A stretch of 64,000 bases of DNA from Utricularia gibba (taxonomy: Eukaryota; Plantae; Magnoliophyta): assembly GCA_002189035.1 (NCBI GenBank), contig NEEC01000010.1:2046001-2110000 (forward strand), in the 5' to 3' direction. Positions within the stretch are counted from its first letter, which is position 1. The number at the start of each line of letters is the position of its first letter. This document shows positions 3,098-9,621 of the stretch, one piece after another. Under the pieces are notes generated by a model. That model saw nothing but the letters and a program-made list of their open reading frames with translations. It searched no databases and had not been told where the DNA came from. Made by a program: the position numbers and the translations under genes.

Positions 3098-3430
3098 TGT
3101 CTAATCGACACTTTTTGGGTTCTTTGGACCAAGTAAGAGCTTGTTTCATATTCTAAGGCATTTAGCTCTCTAAGAAAAAGATGATGTGGTTTAATTTTCA
3201 TGTTTATCATATTTAATTTCTAAATTTTAATGTACATCAAACAAAATTAATTCTAGATGTTTTATACCTTAAATAGTTCTCCTTTGTGGGGCATGTTATC
3301 TCGCACATCTAATTTGGATTCATTTATTATAATACATAGGAGTTAATGGTAGTTTTAAAATTTACCCATCTTTCATTTCCATCACACACACTAAAATAAA
3401 TGTATAATACATTTATTATACACTCAAGTA

Positions 3431-3827
3431 GTGTTTTGGAAAATTTTTATAATTTATTTTTACTTTTCAAAAGTAAAAATAATTTTGTTCTAAAACAATT
3501 TTAATTATAAAATTAATTTTATCAAAAATATTTTTAAAATTATAAATATAAAAGTTATTTTTGAAAAAGTAATGAATTGGTTACTCAAAAACTTAAATAG
3601 TATTCTGAAAAATTTTTTAAAACTGTTTTTATTTTTCAAAATTACTTTTAAAAAATAGAAATAAAAAGTAAAAGTAATCAATTCATTATTTTTTTAAAAA
3701 TAACTTTTATAGTTATAATTTTAAAAATATTTTTGATAAAATTAATTTTACAATTAAAATTATTTTAGAACAAAATTATTTTTATTTGTAAAAATTAGAA
3801 ATAAATTATAAAAATTTTTAAGAACAC
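3431..3827. mobile_element. Fold-back/MITE element with ~155-bp terminal inverted repeats
   Basis: 3431-3585 matches the reverse complement of 3673-3827 with about 14 mismatches by hand alignment (~90%), around an 87-bp spacer. No coding capacity and TSD uncertain. Confidence 0.85.
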
Positions 3828-3906
3828 TTATTTAAATTCATAGAATTTATTTTTCAAAAAAAAACCCAAGAGTCGGTATCAGAAACTCTCAACTCCAGCA
3901 AGATGG

Positions 3907-5988
3907 TCAACTCTCGACCGATTGGCGTTGCGTGGATCTGGATTCAAATAGCTCCCTATCTGAAATGGATCTGATCTCAACAAGAGACTCGAGGACTTGT
4001 TGCATTGAAGGCCTCTTTTCAGGGTCAGTTTGGAGGCATCTCCCAGAGAGACATGCCGTCCGGTGTGCCGCATTGGGCGTATAGTTGCCGTCCAACGCAG
4101 TATCCATGAATTCCTTCAACTTTGCTTTCTTGCGTAAGAGGGGCCGCGTCCATTCCACTAGATTAACTTTGCTGGGGTTCCGTTTGTCCAAAGGTCGGAA
4201 CCCAGTAAGCATTTCTAGCATCACCACTCCAAACCCATAGGCATCACTCTTCTTAGTTAGGTGACCTTGCCACGCAAGAACCAGGATCAAAGAAGATTAG
4301 CAAAAATGAAAAACTTTTGGCACTCCTCCCTTTTTCATTTCCAGTTCTATTTCCGGATGTGAAGGAGCATTCTTTTTTACCTGTCATAATGTACTCAGGA
4401 GCAGCATACCCAGATGTGCCCATAACCTAGTGCTTACGTGGCTGTGACCATCCATCGGACCAAGTCTCGCCAAACCAAAGTCACCAACCTTTGGGGTGAA
4501 CATCTGAGAGGCTCAAAAGGTAAGAGAAGATTTGCACAAAAGCAACGGCAAGAGTTCATAGCTGAAAGCTTAAATAATGTAACTCCCTGCTATGCGCCTG
4601 TGCAGATTTGAAGTAGAATAAATCGAATTCATGAGCTTGAATCATCATAGAACACAAAATCATTCGTCTCCATATCAACCATAACTCAGCTCGGATAGTG
4701 ATGATGTGAATCGTACCTTATCAAGCAATATGTTTGAGGTCTTCACATCCCTCAATATAATATTTATCGAGTGTAGGTACGCAACTGCTCGAGCAACTCC
4801 GGTTAGTATACTCAGCCTTGTATCCCAAGGAAGAGATGGAGCAACTGAATCCCCTGTCAAAAAAAAAAATGATGCAGCTTAATCAAAACTCATGCTTCAT
4901 GAAAGGGCGGTTGTTTAAGTGAAGAAAATAATTATTATTCACTCTTAAAAAGATGAACGTCCAAGCTTCCGTTGTCCATGAATTCATATACTAGTGATAA
5001 CTTCTCATCCTCCACGCAGTAGCCCAGTAGGTTGACAATATTAGGATGAAAGATCTTCGACAGTAATTGGACCTCGGACTACAAGTACCATCACAATTGA
5101 AACATTAAAATGGAAAAAACAACCCATCAGAAACAAGAAAAAAAAACATTTTCACTTCTAATGTACATCATAAACTTAAAGGAAAAAAATGGAGCTTTTT
5201 CTCAGTGTCCAGAATAAGTTTTTTTCCCACCAAGAACGCAAACCAACGACAAATGAGGAGAGGCAAAAATCAAATATGAGGGTCTGAAGAACCTAGCCCA
5301 GTTGGATGGCATCATTGTTAGTGATGGTTTGGAAATATACGGTTGCAGATGCACTTTGTGTATCGTGAAAGTACAGAAACAACAACACTATAGGAGGAAA
5401 GAATAGTGGAAGATTTTGATACGGGAGATGCTGATATCGTCTTCTGGAAAACCCAAAACACTGCACTATTTTGGATTCGACAAGAAGTCATGTGGGTTGT
5501 ATCCCCTTTTTTATTGTAACTTGGATCCCGTAAAAGGCCAAAAAAGAGATTTAAGGGGATTTGTAACTTGTATCCCCGATCGAACTCACAGGGAATTAGA
5601 TGTAACCCGAAGGAGCCAGGAGCCGACACTCGCCAGTGAAAAAAAAAAGAAAAAGCATTGAGATTTAAAATTACCTGCCACCGTTAATCCCTTCTGCTAC
5701 CGGAACTCAACATCTTAACAGCAACTGGGTAGCTACTTGGAATTCCACCACCAATATTTCCCTTCAGCCAACCTTTATACACTCTCCCAACCACCTCTCC
5801 TAGAAGAGTACTGAAGTTTCGCGTAGCCGCCGTCAGTTCTGAAAAGGAGAAGACCCTTCCACCGGGGGTTGAAGCCATATCCTGGAGTTCAAGTATTTTG
5901 TCGTCCAAAACACTAGCATTCTTAAAAGCAACTTTCCCTGACTGCGTGTTATTGGTGCTGAGACATATGCATTGTCAGTACAAAACAG
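3907..5988 (-). CDS. RLCK-VII-type (PBL-like) kinase module, 5 exons; probably the C-terminal second kinase of CrRLK1L copy 2
   Basis: Exons ~5988-5675 ([23 protein letters not shown]), ~5079-4941 ([32 protein letters not shown]), ~4857-4720 ([20 protein letters not shown]), ~4505-4381 ([21 protein letters not shown]) and ~4275-3907 ([16 protein letters not shown]). Several -1 lesions and an in-frame TGA at 5975-5977. Confidence 0.88.
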
Positions 5989-6120
5989 CTGAAGAGTAAA
6001 ATGATAACTAAACCTGAAAGCACAAATAATCTTCATGTTCTAAAATTACTGGTCTCCTTGAAAAAATAAGAATACAAAAACCGTGCAGGAGTGTAATATA
6101 TTATGGATAGGATTCAATAC

Positions 6121-8585
6121 CTGATTGTAAAACTTTGTCATTTCTCTTTGATGATTTTCTACTCTTCCATACCGAAGTAAAAGGCAAAACCGTGATACTT
6201 TGTGCAATGCGGTGTTGCTCCCATGTTTTTACCGTCTAATGACATTTGGGTACTGGACAGTTAGTCATCGGGGTCGTAGAATTTGGAAAACAATGGTGTG
6301 CGGTAGATGGTGGTAAAAAATCAGTTATGCTAGTTATCTCCTTCGGTACCAAAGATTTGCCTTGTTCCTGCTGTTCAAGAGCAAGCTCAAGGTTTATAAT
6401 GACTTGGCCTATTGTTGGGCGTTTCATTGGCTCATCATTCAAACATTTCTCTGTGATGCTAAAAATGTTCTTTGACTATCTCGCAGTAGCTCCCCTGATA
6501 TACTTGGATCAACGATTGATCAATTTCACCTTTCCTGATTTTATTTCGAGCCCAGATGGTTAAAGAGCGCTTCTCTTCAGCAGCCAATGGCTCCACTGCG
6601 GGTCTCCCACATAGTACTTCCAACAAAACAACACCAAAGGAGTAAGTGTCACTTTTCGTGGTGAGTTCATGAGTTATGCCATAATATGGGTCCAGGTACC
6701 CCGCTGTGCCCTTCGCATGTTCGCTTACTCTGCTTTGCAGACCTTTCCATTCTCCCATTTAGCCAAACCAAAATCTGAAACTTTAGCCAAAAGATGTTCA
6801 TCAAGTAGAATGTTTGAAGATTTTATATCACGGTGTATGATCCCATGTCCAGTGTGAAGATAATCTAACCCTCTGCAGCTCCAATGCATATTTTAAGCCT
6901 TTGAGTCCATGACAAAGTTAAAAAGGCTTCGTTCTTCTTAGCAAGTTTATACAAATGATCTGCCAGTGATCCACAAGACACGTGTTCGTAAACGAGGATC
7001 ATTTCATGTCTCTCCTTACAGTACCCAATCAGAGAGACCAGGTTAGAGTGCCGCAGCTCAGAAAGAGCTTCAATCTCTGTCCAGAACTCCCGCTTCCCTT
7101 GCCTGGAGCTCCCTTTTAATCTTTTAATGGCGACCGTCTCCCTACCATTGTCTATAGTCCCTTTGTAGACATTGCCAAATCCTCCCTTTCCAATCAGAAA
7201 TTGGAAGTCCTGTGTGGCAGCCTTGATCTCATTAAATGAAAAAAGACGGAATAGCCTTTTAGCCCTTGCAGATGGCCTGCTTTCCCCTACCTCTGCAAAC
7301 TCAACTCTAGTGATCCTTCGCAGGAGGTGTACAATTATGTTCACCACACAAATCACGGTTACGAACCCATTGGCAACAGAATTTCTTCGAGCTATAAACG
7401 AGAACAATGCATGTATATCATTCAGTGGCAGTGAATCCGAAACAATTGGCAAACTGGGATTTGGACCTGCTAGACTGTTTTCCAGGTTACTGATCTTGAA
7501 TATCTCAAATCCTTCAAACAAGCCATGTGCATCAGCGAATCCATCTTCCGCATGGAAATGGGTAACTATTTCAGGCTTATCCTTCCGTTTTTGTCCACTC
7601 ATCACCACCATGTAGTTCTTATGCCATAAGAAACCTTCTTCATTCCTTAAACGCAGTACATCAACAGTAGTAGCAGCGATCACCCCATTAATGAAAACCG
7701 CGAAATCCTTTCCCTTCGCTTCTGCAATTTTGAGTCCAATCTCACAGAAATGAATCCTTACCAAGTACTTAAATCCCACATCCACAGATGTCTTCCAGGA
7801 CATGTTCTTCTCAACCTGGAATCCTCCCTGGTACTTCCAACTTCTTTCCCAGACCCGAAAAATGGTTCCAACATCACCAATCATGTAGGTAATGGACCCA
7901 CTTTCATATCTACTCTTCGCACAATTTCTAGAGCCGTGTTTCTATCATTGTTCACCGTATCTTTCTGGCCATCAATTTGGACGGCAGTTGAGTCTCCGTG
8001 ACAGTAAGAAAGACCAGAAGACACTGACAGAATCTCGATACCGTTTACAAAAGCATACGCTCCAATGATGGAGTCTGAGTAGGAGTAAAAATTATATCAA
8101 GGGCTGATTCACTTCAACAGTCAACAAAATTCCTTGACAACAGCATCCAGAGCAAGCGCGCGGGCGGTAATCGAAGGGCTGAAGTTATGGAGAAGCGTGA
8201 AATGACCGGCTTCAACACTGAAGAAGTCAGTGAAGTACTCCAACCCCTTACTAAAATGAAGACGGATGAACTTCTCCCCGGGATTCAGCCGAAATGTATA
8301 CAAAAATTGCGATCGAGATACCCTAGCGGTGGAGTAGGTAACTAAATCAAGATCATTTTTACATCTCACCGTCGTAGACATGCCTTCAATCGTGAAAGAC
8401 TCCGGACGCGAATCTCCCAGCCATTCCCTACCGTTTGGAGCCGTGAACGGAGCGGATGAACCGCAGTTTATCGAAATCTGATCGTTCTCCGCCGCCGCCG
8501 TAGTTGCTAGTACGGAAACGACACCAAGAATCAACATCAGGTAACACAATCCACCACCTCGGCTCCCCAGCCGCCGCCGTTCCAT
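6121..8585 (-). CDS. CrRLK1L malectin-like receptor kinase, copy 2 (long first exon broken by about ten mostly -1 frameshifts)
   Basis: Colinear with copy 1. ORF pieces 8121..8585, 6865..7884, 6459..6758 and 6236..6442 encode the ectodomain, TM and kinase ([33 protein letters not shown]). The sequence continues to a CAG|GTATT donor at 6121/6120. Confidence 0.9.
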
Positions 8586-9621
8586 CGGATTCGGTGCTAT
8601 TCGATGACGAAATTCGAAAAAAAATCGCACAAAGATGCGGATGGAGTCATACCACAGATTCTGAGAAGCAGTTGACAAGTCCACACGCCGCACAGGCGCA
8701 ACGCAGATCGCGCCAAACCCCGTTTTGCTTTGTTGGACGGCCGAGAGTCAACTATCATTCTTGAGCTTTATAAATGAAGTAATTTCATAATGCTTGGTTT
8801 CTTGTGGATGTGAACCTTTGAGATTCAGCGGTGAGTACCTGGAAGGGTGTCTAGCTTTCTCCTACTTGAAGGAAGACGACTTTATATGAGATTATTTGTT
8901 TTTGTGTTGGATTTTGTGTGCGACCGACTTACGTATTAAGCTTTGGGTCTGAGATCGTGACTTTCTGTAATTATATAGAGCTGCAGAAGAGTATTTTACT
9001 TAGCTCAATAAAAACAAGTATGAAAAAGCAGAAAGATCTTAGACCATTTTATCTTTTTAATATTGATATTGACATTTCTTGAAATTAATTTATTAAGTTT
9101 TTTTATTAAATTTACTTTACGTTTGTATTTATTTTCAAAAATAATATTAAATAAATATTTTACATTATAAATCATTTCCAAAAGAAAATGACACATAATT
9201 ATTCCAAAAATAAATAAAGATGCTGTAAAAAAAGAAGATCAAATTAGATTCTGAATTGGTATTTTTGAAAACTAACCATCATAATATTTTCTTTTATACA
9301 TTGAGATAAAAATTTTACAGATAAAATGATTATTTTTCATACGTAATATAGGATTGTTACTTTTCAAAATCATTACTATCTCAATTTATGTGATAAAAAT
9401 GGCCATCATGGCTTGATTTAAACTTAAATGCAAAATTCAAAGGGTATTTTAGACTTTAGTCAAATGCAAGTTATAATTTTTTTTTTATAAATATTTATAT
9501 ATAAAATGACCCAACCAGAGGCCATCTTCATCTTCAGCACCCCAAAAACCCAATGGACAGCAGCCACCGTTGAAGGAAGAAAAAAGGTTTTTGTTCCTTT
9601 GGGCATTGCAAACAAAAGAAG

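Follow-up and report, generated by a model that had tools for sequence, protein, structure and literature searches.

A transcribed six-exon gene of Utricularia gibba probably joins a malectin-like CrRLK1L receptor and an RLCK-VII-type kinase in one chain

The window analysed here is a 64,000-nt stretch of the Utricularia gibba genome (contig NEEC01000010.1, positions 2,046,001 to 2,110,000 of the forward strand), which contains a tandem pair of receptor-kinase copies on the minus strand. The subject of this report is copy 2 together with the kinase sequence that follows it, at 8585-3907. This region is most likely, with a probability of roughly 0.8, one transcribed six-exon gene for a malectin-like ectodomain, a membrane helix, a CrRLK1L kinase, a linker and an RLCK-VII-type kinase, with a predicted full frame of about 1,170 codons. 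The parts of the gene were assigned as follows, in order of transcription.

8585-6121, minus strand: exon 1, from the start codon (8585-8583) through signal peptide, ectodomain, helix and CrRLK1L kinase into the first part of the linker; from three-frame reading and sequencing reads
8585-8490, minus strand: signal peptide of about 32 residues, N-terminal to the ectodomain
8489-7369, minus strand: malectin-like ectodomain, matching the solved FERONIA/ANXUR1 ectodomains
7368-7321, minus strand: putative single membrane-spanning stretch followed by RR (to 7315), a hydrophobic run read from the translation, aligned with a hydrophobic stretch of the relatives
7242-6377, minus strand: kinase 1 of CrRLK1L type, DFG kept; Pfam kinase matches, motifs in the restored frame
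6376-6121, minus strand: first part of the linker, short and basic, in which an apparent TAG (6238-6236) and a conserved motif (ALHKVSR) lie
6120-5958, minus strand: intron 1 (163 nt, GT..AG), by the RNA joint 5942/6121; contains TGA 5977-5975
5957-5675, minus strand: exon 2, carrying the rest of the linker and the kinase-2 N-lobe with its glycine loop, VAVK and QGxKEW; from reading frames and RNA
5078-4943, minus strand: exon 3, part of kinase 2 ending in HLFK; GT..AG introns, RNA joints 5080/5694 and 4851/4942 in both RNA runs
4853-4717, minus strand: exon 4, catalytic loop of kinase 2; RNA joints 4851/4942 and 4503/4717
4503-4381, minus strand: exon 5, DFG and activation loop (HSHVSTR), with the window one base short near 4425; RNA joints 4503/4717 and 4263/4379
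4265-3907, minus strand: exon 6, ending kinase 2 with its C-lobe and the stop codon TGA (3909-3907); from the open frame and the Pfam kinase C-lobe

The joint between the two halves of the gene was found in RNA. Four public runs of U. gibba, from four studies (RNA runs X1 and X5, DNA runs X11 and X12), were compared with positions 3850-8700, and read contigs were placed at ≥95% identity. One X1 contig (record 3, 581 nt) comprises 6492-6121 and 5957-5757 joined across a GT..AG intron; it is continuous from the 3′ coding part of kinase 1, over the apparent TAG, to the CAG/GT donor at 6121, and on into the kinase-2 exon. This is the exact donor, with 6121 as last exon base, at which the original prediction, made from the letters of the window, had ended the linker, and the frame-2 text leading up to it was confirmed. 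The acceptor had been placed at 5988 (AG 5990-5989), which is not the site in use: the RNA takes AG 5959-5958, 31 nt downstream, so that exon 2 starts at 5957 and the TGA at 5977-5975 is intronic. Both this TGA and the TAG at 6238-6236 are present in the window, as had been reported. Between the two sides of the joint 5942/6121 there are 16 RNA letters against 15 window letters (5957-5943). Because of this one extra letter the frame of kinase 2 joins that of the linker, and the protein reading over the junction is LQS/AP, matching S(V/L)SAP in Lamiales relatives. The two halves are thus compatible in phase as had been proposed, but only with one letter more than the window holds in 5943-5957.

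RNA depth over intron 1 was zero in X1 and X5, and the DNA run X12 covers the same stretch. In X1, depth reached 12-30 in most of the exonic bins, in one half as in the other, and fell to zero over the long introns. The downstream kinase had been described as having five exons, and all four of its internal junctions are present in RNA of two studies; altogether, the RNA junctions define GT..AG introns at 6120-5958, 5674-5079, 4942-4854, 4716-4504 and 4380-4266. The gap of some 250 nt between the apparent stop and the downstream kinase, which had been held too short to contain a promoter, is mostly the 163-nt intron, and that argument is moot.

As assembled, the gene appears shattered, with about 16 losses of one or two bases along its length. 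The receptor half changes frame near 8122, 8101, 8059, 7885, 6874, 6740, 6519 and 6458; in kinase 2 the glycine loop is damaged, a TAA lies in frame near 5690, and the frame changes once more near 4425. Among the indels listed, all but one are letters that are present in the reads and absent from the window at the sites of the frame breaks, mostly at full depth in the covering contigs, including DNA at about 45x; the state of the window at these sites was seen in none of the contigs of the four runs. When one read-supported letter is counted at each of the eight receptor-half sites, a 785-codon open frame results (8585-6239) in which every receptor-kinase motif is present. In kinase 2, the letters AG (5790) and T (5795) from the reads produce a canonical glycine loop (GEGGFGRVYKG), and at the 5080/5694 joint a run of 20 RNA letters gives SQGIKEWQ at the place of the in-frame TAA. 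Around 4425, one extra letter each was found in X5 (record 21) and X11 (record 8), and a frame event occurs here in all five alignments to Lamiales proteins.

Since the reads carry the missing letters at the break sites, a pattern that was tested directly at this locus, the frame breaks are very probably assembly errors rather than decay. The gene, in spite of its breaks, its in-frame TAA and its apparent TAG, is thus very probably intact and expressed, and gene models in this U. gibba assembly are best built with reads. The contigs are 95-99% identical to the window and differ from it mainly by transitions, so the samples do not represent the same haplotype as the assembly.

The linker requires closer reading, as all three frames of the window meet a stop in it: the TAG at 6238-6236 in the receptor frame, 6231-6229 in frame 0, and 6263-6261 in frame 1. 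The X1 contig that carries the splice holds four extra letters in 6121-6492, one of them at 6458 and the other three within 6121-6457. Over 6301-6493, the X5 contig of record 23 shows one gap, and provided that the tables agree this gap is the 6458 letter; if X1 resembles X5 here, its three further letters most probably lie in 6121-6300. Frame-aware alignment places window frame 0 at 6228-6190 against K(D/H)G.K.AMHKLSR of the relatives, and frame 2 from 6186 against their LLPWNAVWSSVKPSKKKDPV. A one-base shift is needed at 6186-6189, and the score is 80 in the frame-aware against 54 in the single-frame alignment. With three Lamiales proteins the linker scored 62-80 against shuffle means of 23-24 (z 9-11), and the conserved linker motif ahead of kinase 2 is present, aligning to AMHKLSRLLPWNAVWSSVKPSKKKDPV.

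Alignments to the Lamiales proteins place further shifts near 6244-6256 and 6218-6224. An open path through the linker takes exactly three one-base shifts, from frame 2 to 1 in 6260-6239, from 1 to 0 near 6224-6215, and from 0 to 2 at 6189-6186, and three is also the number of X1 letters that are not individually placed. If these letters sit where the homology requires, the TAG at 6238-6236 falls out of frame. On the RNA letter count and the linker homology taken together, the frame is predicted with good confidence to be continuous across the linker. At position 6229, the X1 contig has G where the window has A (minus strand), which on the predicted path changes DGKN to DGRN, nearer to DGRK of the relatives.

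The ectodomain matched solved chains of FERONIA and ANXUR1 (6a5b, E-value 6.5e-15; 6fig, 5.6e-12). Pfam Malectin and Malectin_like matches on pieces of the window stayed below the curated cut-off, and collinear relatives carry PF12819 and PF11721. For kinase 1, the nearest solved chains were those of the FERONIA kinase (7xdv and 9ubi, E-value 1e-36), ahead of Pto, SYMRK and BRI1. By these nearest matches, ectodomain and kinase 1 are assigned to a predicted CrRLK1L of the FERONIA clade. Exon 6 of kinase 2, as it stands in the window, matched RIPK (2e-22), BIK1 (9e-21) and PBL2 (6e-19), followed by BAK1/SYMRK at 1e-12 or weaker, and the kinase 2 domain of a Lamiales relative gave 370-395 bits with PBL2, BIK1 and RIPK against at most 242 bits for the rest. 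The catalytic loop of kinase 2 contains ILRD in place of the YRD of most RLCK-VII kinases.

Kinase 2 is an RLCK-VII-type domain and not an RLCK, since it is spliced onto receptor exon 1; it is not a free-standing cytoplasmic kinase. The spliced RNA contig and the end-to-end alignment to relatives place two kinases in one polypeptide, as in a tandem kinase protein, with the frame across 6186-6260 predicted. The product differs from soluble tandem kinases such as WTK1 and sunflower RLK-2 in having a signal peptide, an ectodomain and a putative membrane helix. Once the read-supported letters are counted, both kinases keep the glycine loop, VAxK, the catalytic Asp/Asn and DFG; by these residues the protein looks like a kinase-kinase rather than a kinase-pseudokinase pairing.

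A 339-residue piece translated from 7884-6868 was searched against 1.84 billion representative proteins. The closest relatives were mostly of 1,150-1,250 residues and had two kinase stretches, and ordinary CrRLK1Ls of about 870 residues ranked lower. Pfam identified Malectin_like and two kinase domains in seven of the eight relatives scanned. With the 1,251-residue Striga asiatica protein (P0004) as query, dozens of proteins of 1,150-1,270 residues were returned that span at least 95% of the query, from the Lamiales genera Orobanche, Paulownia, Erythranthe, Castilleja, Buddleja, Sesamum, Salvia, Andrographis, Penstemon and Henckelia and, in Ericales, from Rhododendron; long models with partial coverage came from Olea, Actinidia, Cornus and Nyssa. 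Several RefSeq models among the relatives (Sesamum, Salvia, Andrographis) bear the name “putative receptor-like protein kinase At5g39000” or “FERONIA”. The remark, made with the original prediction, that some Lamiales CrRLK1L-like models carry a second kinase was thereby borne out.

Five Lamiales proteins (1,206-1,270 residues) could be aligned to the spliced window, starting at about residue 5-46 and ending close to the C-terminus, with about 50% identity. The alignment paths had no stop across the linker for three of the five proteins and no stop anywhere for two; the proteins of 1,254 and 1,270 residues gave no linker stop, and the other three gave at most three stops. Together with the spliced RNA contig, the linker homology and the agreement between extra letters and shifts, these end-to-end alignments uphold the chain of malectin-like ectodomain, putative transmembrane helix and two kinases, a CrRLK1L with a complete RLCK-VII-type kinase, that had been proposed for this locus.

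Another member of the family, P0011, is encoded by an uninterrupted 3.6-kb frame on contigs of 3.8-4.2 kb from three runs, with no intron and with flanks of about 0.25 kb. These contigs look like transcripts, and in that case the layout with two kinases is transcribed as a single mRNA in one plant at least. Protein fragments from U. gibba RNA contigs, queried with the exon-2 piece and with 6239-6442, returned no match, a search that had no positive control and carries no weight. The linker DNA likewise had no match in an exact-pattern scan of metagenome contigs.

Several points weigh against one continuous two-kinase chain. Its support is at the level of DNA, RNA and sequence homology. The linking splice was found in the X1 contig only, X5 having no contig on 6118-6279, and an assembler can merge overlapping transcripts, so a contig over both halves is no proof of a single mRNA molecule. 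That the TAG leaves the frame is inferred and not read directly from placed letters, and for two Lamiales proteins the aligner went straight through the TAG, a path it preferred to one with three shifts. The possible merging of transcripts and these paths through the TAG would also suit two neighbouring genes, of which the receptor stops at TAG 6238-6236 and the RLCK-VII kinase comes from its own transcript or starts internally, for instance at ATG 6224 or at another Met. The window keeps the TAG in the receptor frame, and this ATG, 12 nt past it, opens MGATPHC, which resembles the N-termini of RLCKs. A separate RLCK gene beginning at ATG 6224, with MGATPHC as an acylation-like start, was the reading favoured at first; it fell once the extra RNA letter in 5943-5957 was counted and the homology left its frame. 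The frame of ATG 6224 meets stops in the window, and the corrected path departs from it after about three codons. Coding homology to the linker of the relatives flanks the TAG on either side; it depends on frame changes, which the RNA letter count supplies, and dozens of relatives are modelled as a single chain. The contigs between the halves give no signal of an RNA end or start, although that is a signal that contigs cannot show. On this balance, two separate genes are unlikely.

The number of breaks is a further point against an intact gene: about 16 in the 4.7 kb of copy 2, compared with one in 2.2 kb of copy 1, is also the pattern of a decaying copy. Copy 2 could then be a real pseudogene in the reference plant, with the intact reads derived from other accessions or from a near-identical allele, and the contigs, being 95-99% like the window with many transitions, do come from a different haplotype. 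Against such decay, no contig of the four runs, two of them DNA and one at about 45x, has the window's state at the listed sites; the listed indels run, but for one, in a single direction, with the window short of letters; and the locus is transcribed and correctly spliced. A decaying copy 2 is on these grounds very improbable. Copy 1 was also considered as the source of the intact reads and was ruled out, as it is 77.6% identical to copy 2 and the reads were placed at ≥95%.

If the single two-kinase gene is accepted, it is not a new kind of gene, as the layout is already annotated in many asterids and the pairing of kinases is catalogued in the tandem-kinase literature. The nearest counterparts are the Lamiales two-kinase models of Erythranthe guttata (P0158, 1,254 residues), Paulownia fortunei (P0155, 1,270 residues), Orobanche gracilis (P0151) and Striga asiatica (P0004), which have the identical order of parts at about 50% identity and share with the U. 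gibba gene the linker motif HKLSRLLPW.A.W...KPSKKK..SAP and the RLCK-VII-type second kinase. The U. gibba linker is about 100-170 residues shorter, with a single “EITS..D..P” unit, as against at least three in the proteins of Erythranthe, Paulownia and Striga, and this shortening fits a compact genome. The catalytic loop of kinase 2 reads ILRDVK against IYRDFK in the Lamiales models, and the U. gibba gene is a member of a tandem pair, unlike the Lamiales models as described.

In sunflower, the OrDeb2 candidate RLK-2 is a tandem kinase protein that combines a CrRLK1L-1 kinase with an RLCK-VIIa-2 pseudokinase and is described as lacking a transmembrane or membrane-targeting motif (bioRxiv 10.64898/2026.02.12.705495); the preprint cites Reveguk et al. 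2025 for the confinement of the CrRLK1L-1 and RLCK-VIIa-2 pairing to eudicots. RLK-2 has both kinase families in one chain and in the order found in U. gibba, whereas the U. gibba gene has in addition an ectodomain and a putative membrane helix and keeps the catalytic residues in both kinases. The cereal resistance proteins Rpg1 and WTK1/Yr15 (PMC8761531) likewise have two kinases per polypeptide, and beyond the kinase fold they were compared by description only; unlike the U. gibba gene product, the cereal tandem kinase proteins are cytoplasmic, belong to other kinase families and are mostly kinase-pseudokinase combinations. According to PMC7747976, which cites Du et al. 2016, binding of RALF1 is followed by recruitment of RIPK, a free RLCK-VII kinase, to FERONIA, which phosphorylates it. 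FERONIA and RIPK are separate proteins that meet on ligand binding, whereas in U. gibba the corresponding domains, whose nearest solved relatives are FERONIA and RIPK/BIK1/PBL2, would be parts of one chain that parallels this pair.

From what is known of these families, the ectodomain would act as a sensor for a ligand or for cell-wall state, which would activate kinase 1. Rather than recruit a free RLCK-VII kinase, kinase 1 could then phosphorylate the RLCK-VII domain that is covalently tethered to it, and this domain would pass the signal onward. Read in this way, the fusion would be a natural “Rosetta stone” that points to direct action of a CrRLK1L receptor on an RLCK-VII kinase, and the two-kinase receptor a membrane-anchored relative of the tandem kinase proteins that are emerging as resistance genes. 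The role of an immune receptor or integrated decoy, suggested in the original prediction, is a guess. The AvrPphB-type cleavage motif (GDK-SHVS) is absent from the activation loop of kinase 2, where the window reads DGHSHVS, and this gives no support to the idea of an AvrPphB decoy.

The second kinase varies within the family of malectin/two-kinase proteins of 1,050-1,350 residues: by a crude motif count, at least 24 have an RLCK-VII-like catalytic loop and at least 22 have HRDxK. The second kinase of P0014 is CRK/SD1-like and follows the linker motif W.W.A.W..KP.KK, that of P0011 is of the same kind and follows a weaker form of the motif, and several others are degenerate (MHRHVN, LHRNLK). 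The comparison of sequences suggests that the second kinase may have been swapped, or repeatedly captured, within the family. It is conceivable, although rather doubtful, that the family is a modular platform of a receptor and a plug-in kinase, with the conserved linker motif at the receptor's end as a cassette that gained, from lineage to lineage, RLCK-VII, CRK/SD1-like (P0011, P0014) or degenerate second kinases, and that the tethered RLCK-VII domain of the membrane-anchored form serves as bait for those pathogen effectors whose targets are free RLCK-VII kinases. If true, the bait would make this form the equivalent, at the cell surface, of the tandem-kinase resistance proteins of the cytoplasm.

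The other features lie to the left of the gene. Copy 1 was identified as the following element.

2234-1, minus strand: copy 1, older tandem duplicate of the receptor half, 77.6% identical in DNA to copy 2 over 2.2 kb, running off the left edge of the window

The identity of 77.6% indicates that the tandem duplication is old. Copy 1 has one frame break, near 1640 at LSCQG/GANGVPLVGQN, and is open from about 1650 to the left edge; the break is probably another single-base assembly loss. Between the two copies, about 80 nt beyond the stop codon of the two-kinase gene, lies an AT-rich foldback with arms at 3430-3612 and 3646-3828 (183 nt, 85% complementary), which looks like a miniature inverted-repeat transposable element (MITE). 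RNA and DNA contigs of three runs depart from the window at 3867-3871 into unlike sequence, and the assembly and the samples therefore differ structurally in the 3′ untranslated region.

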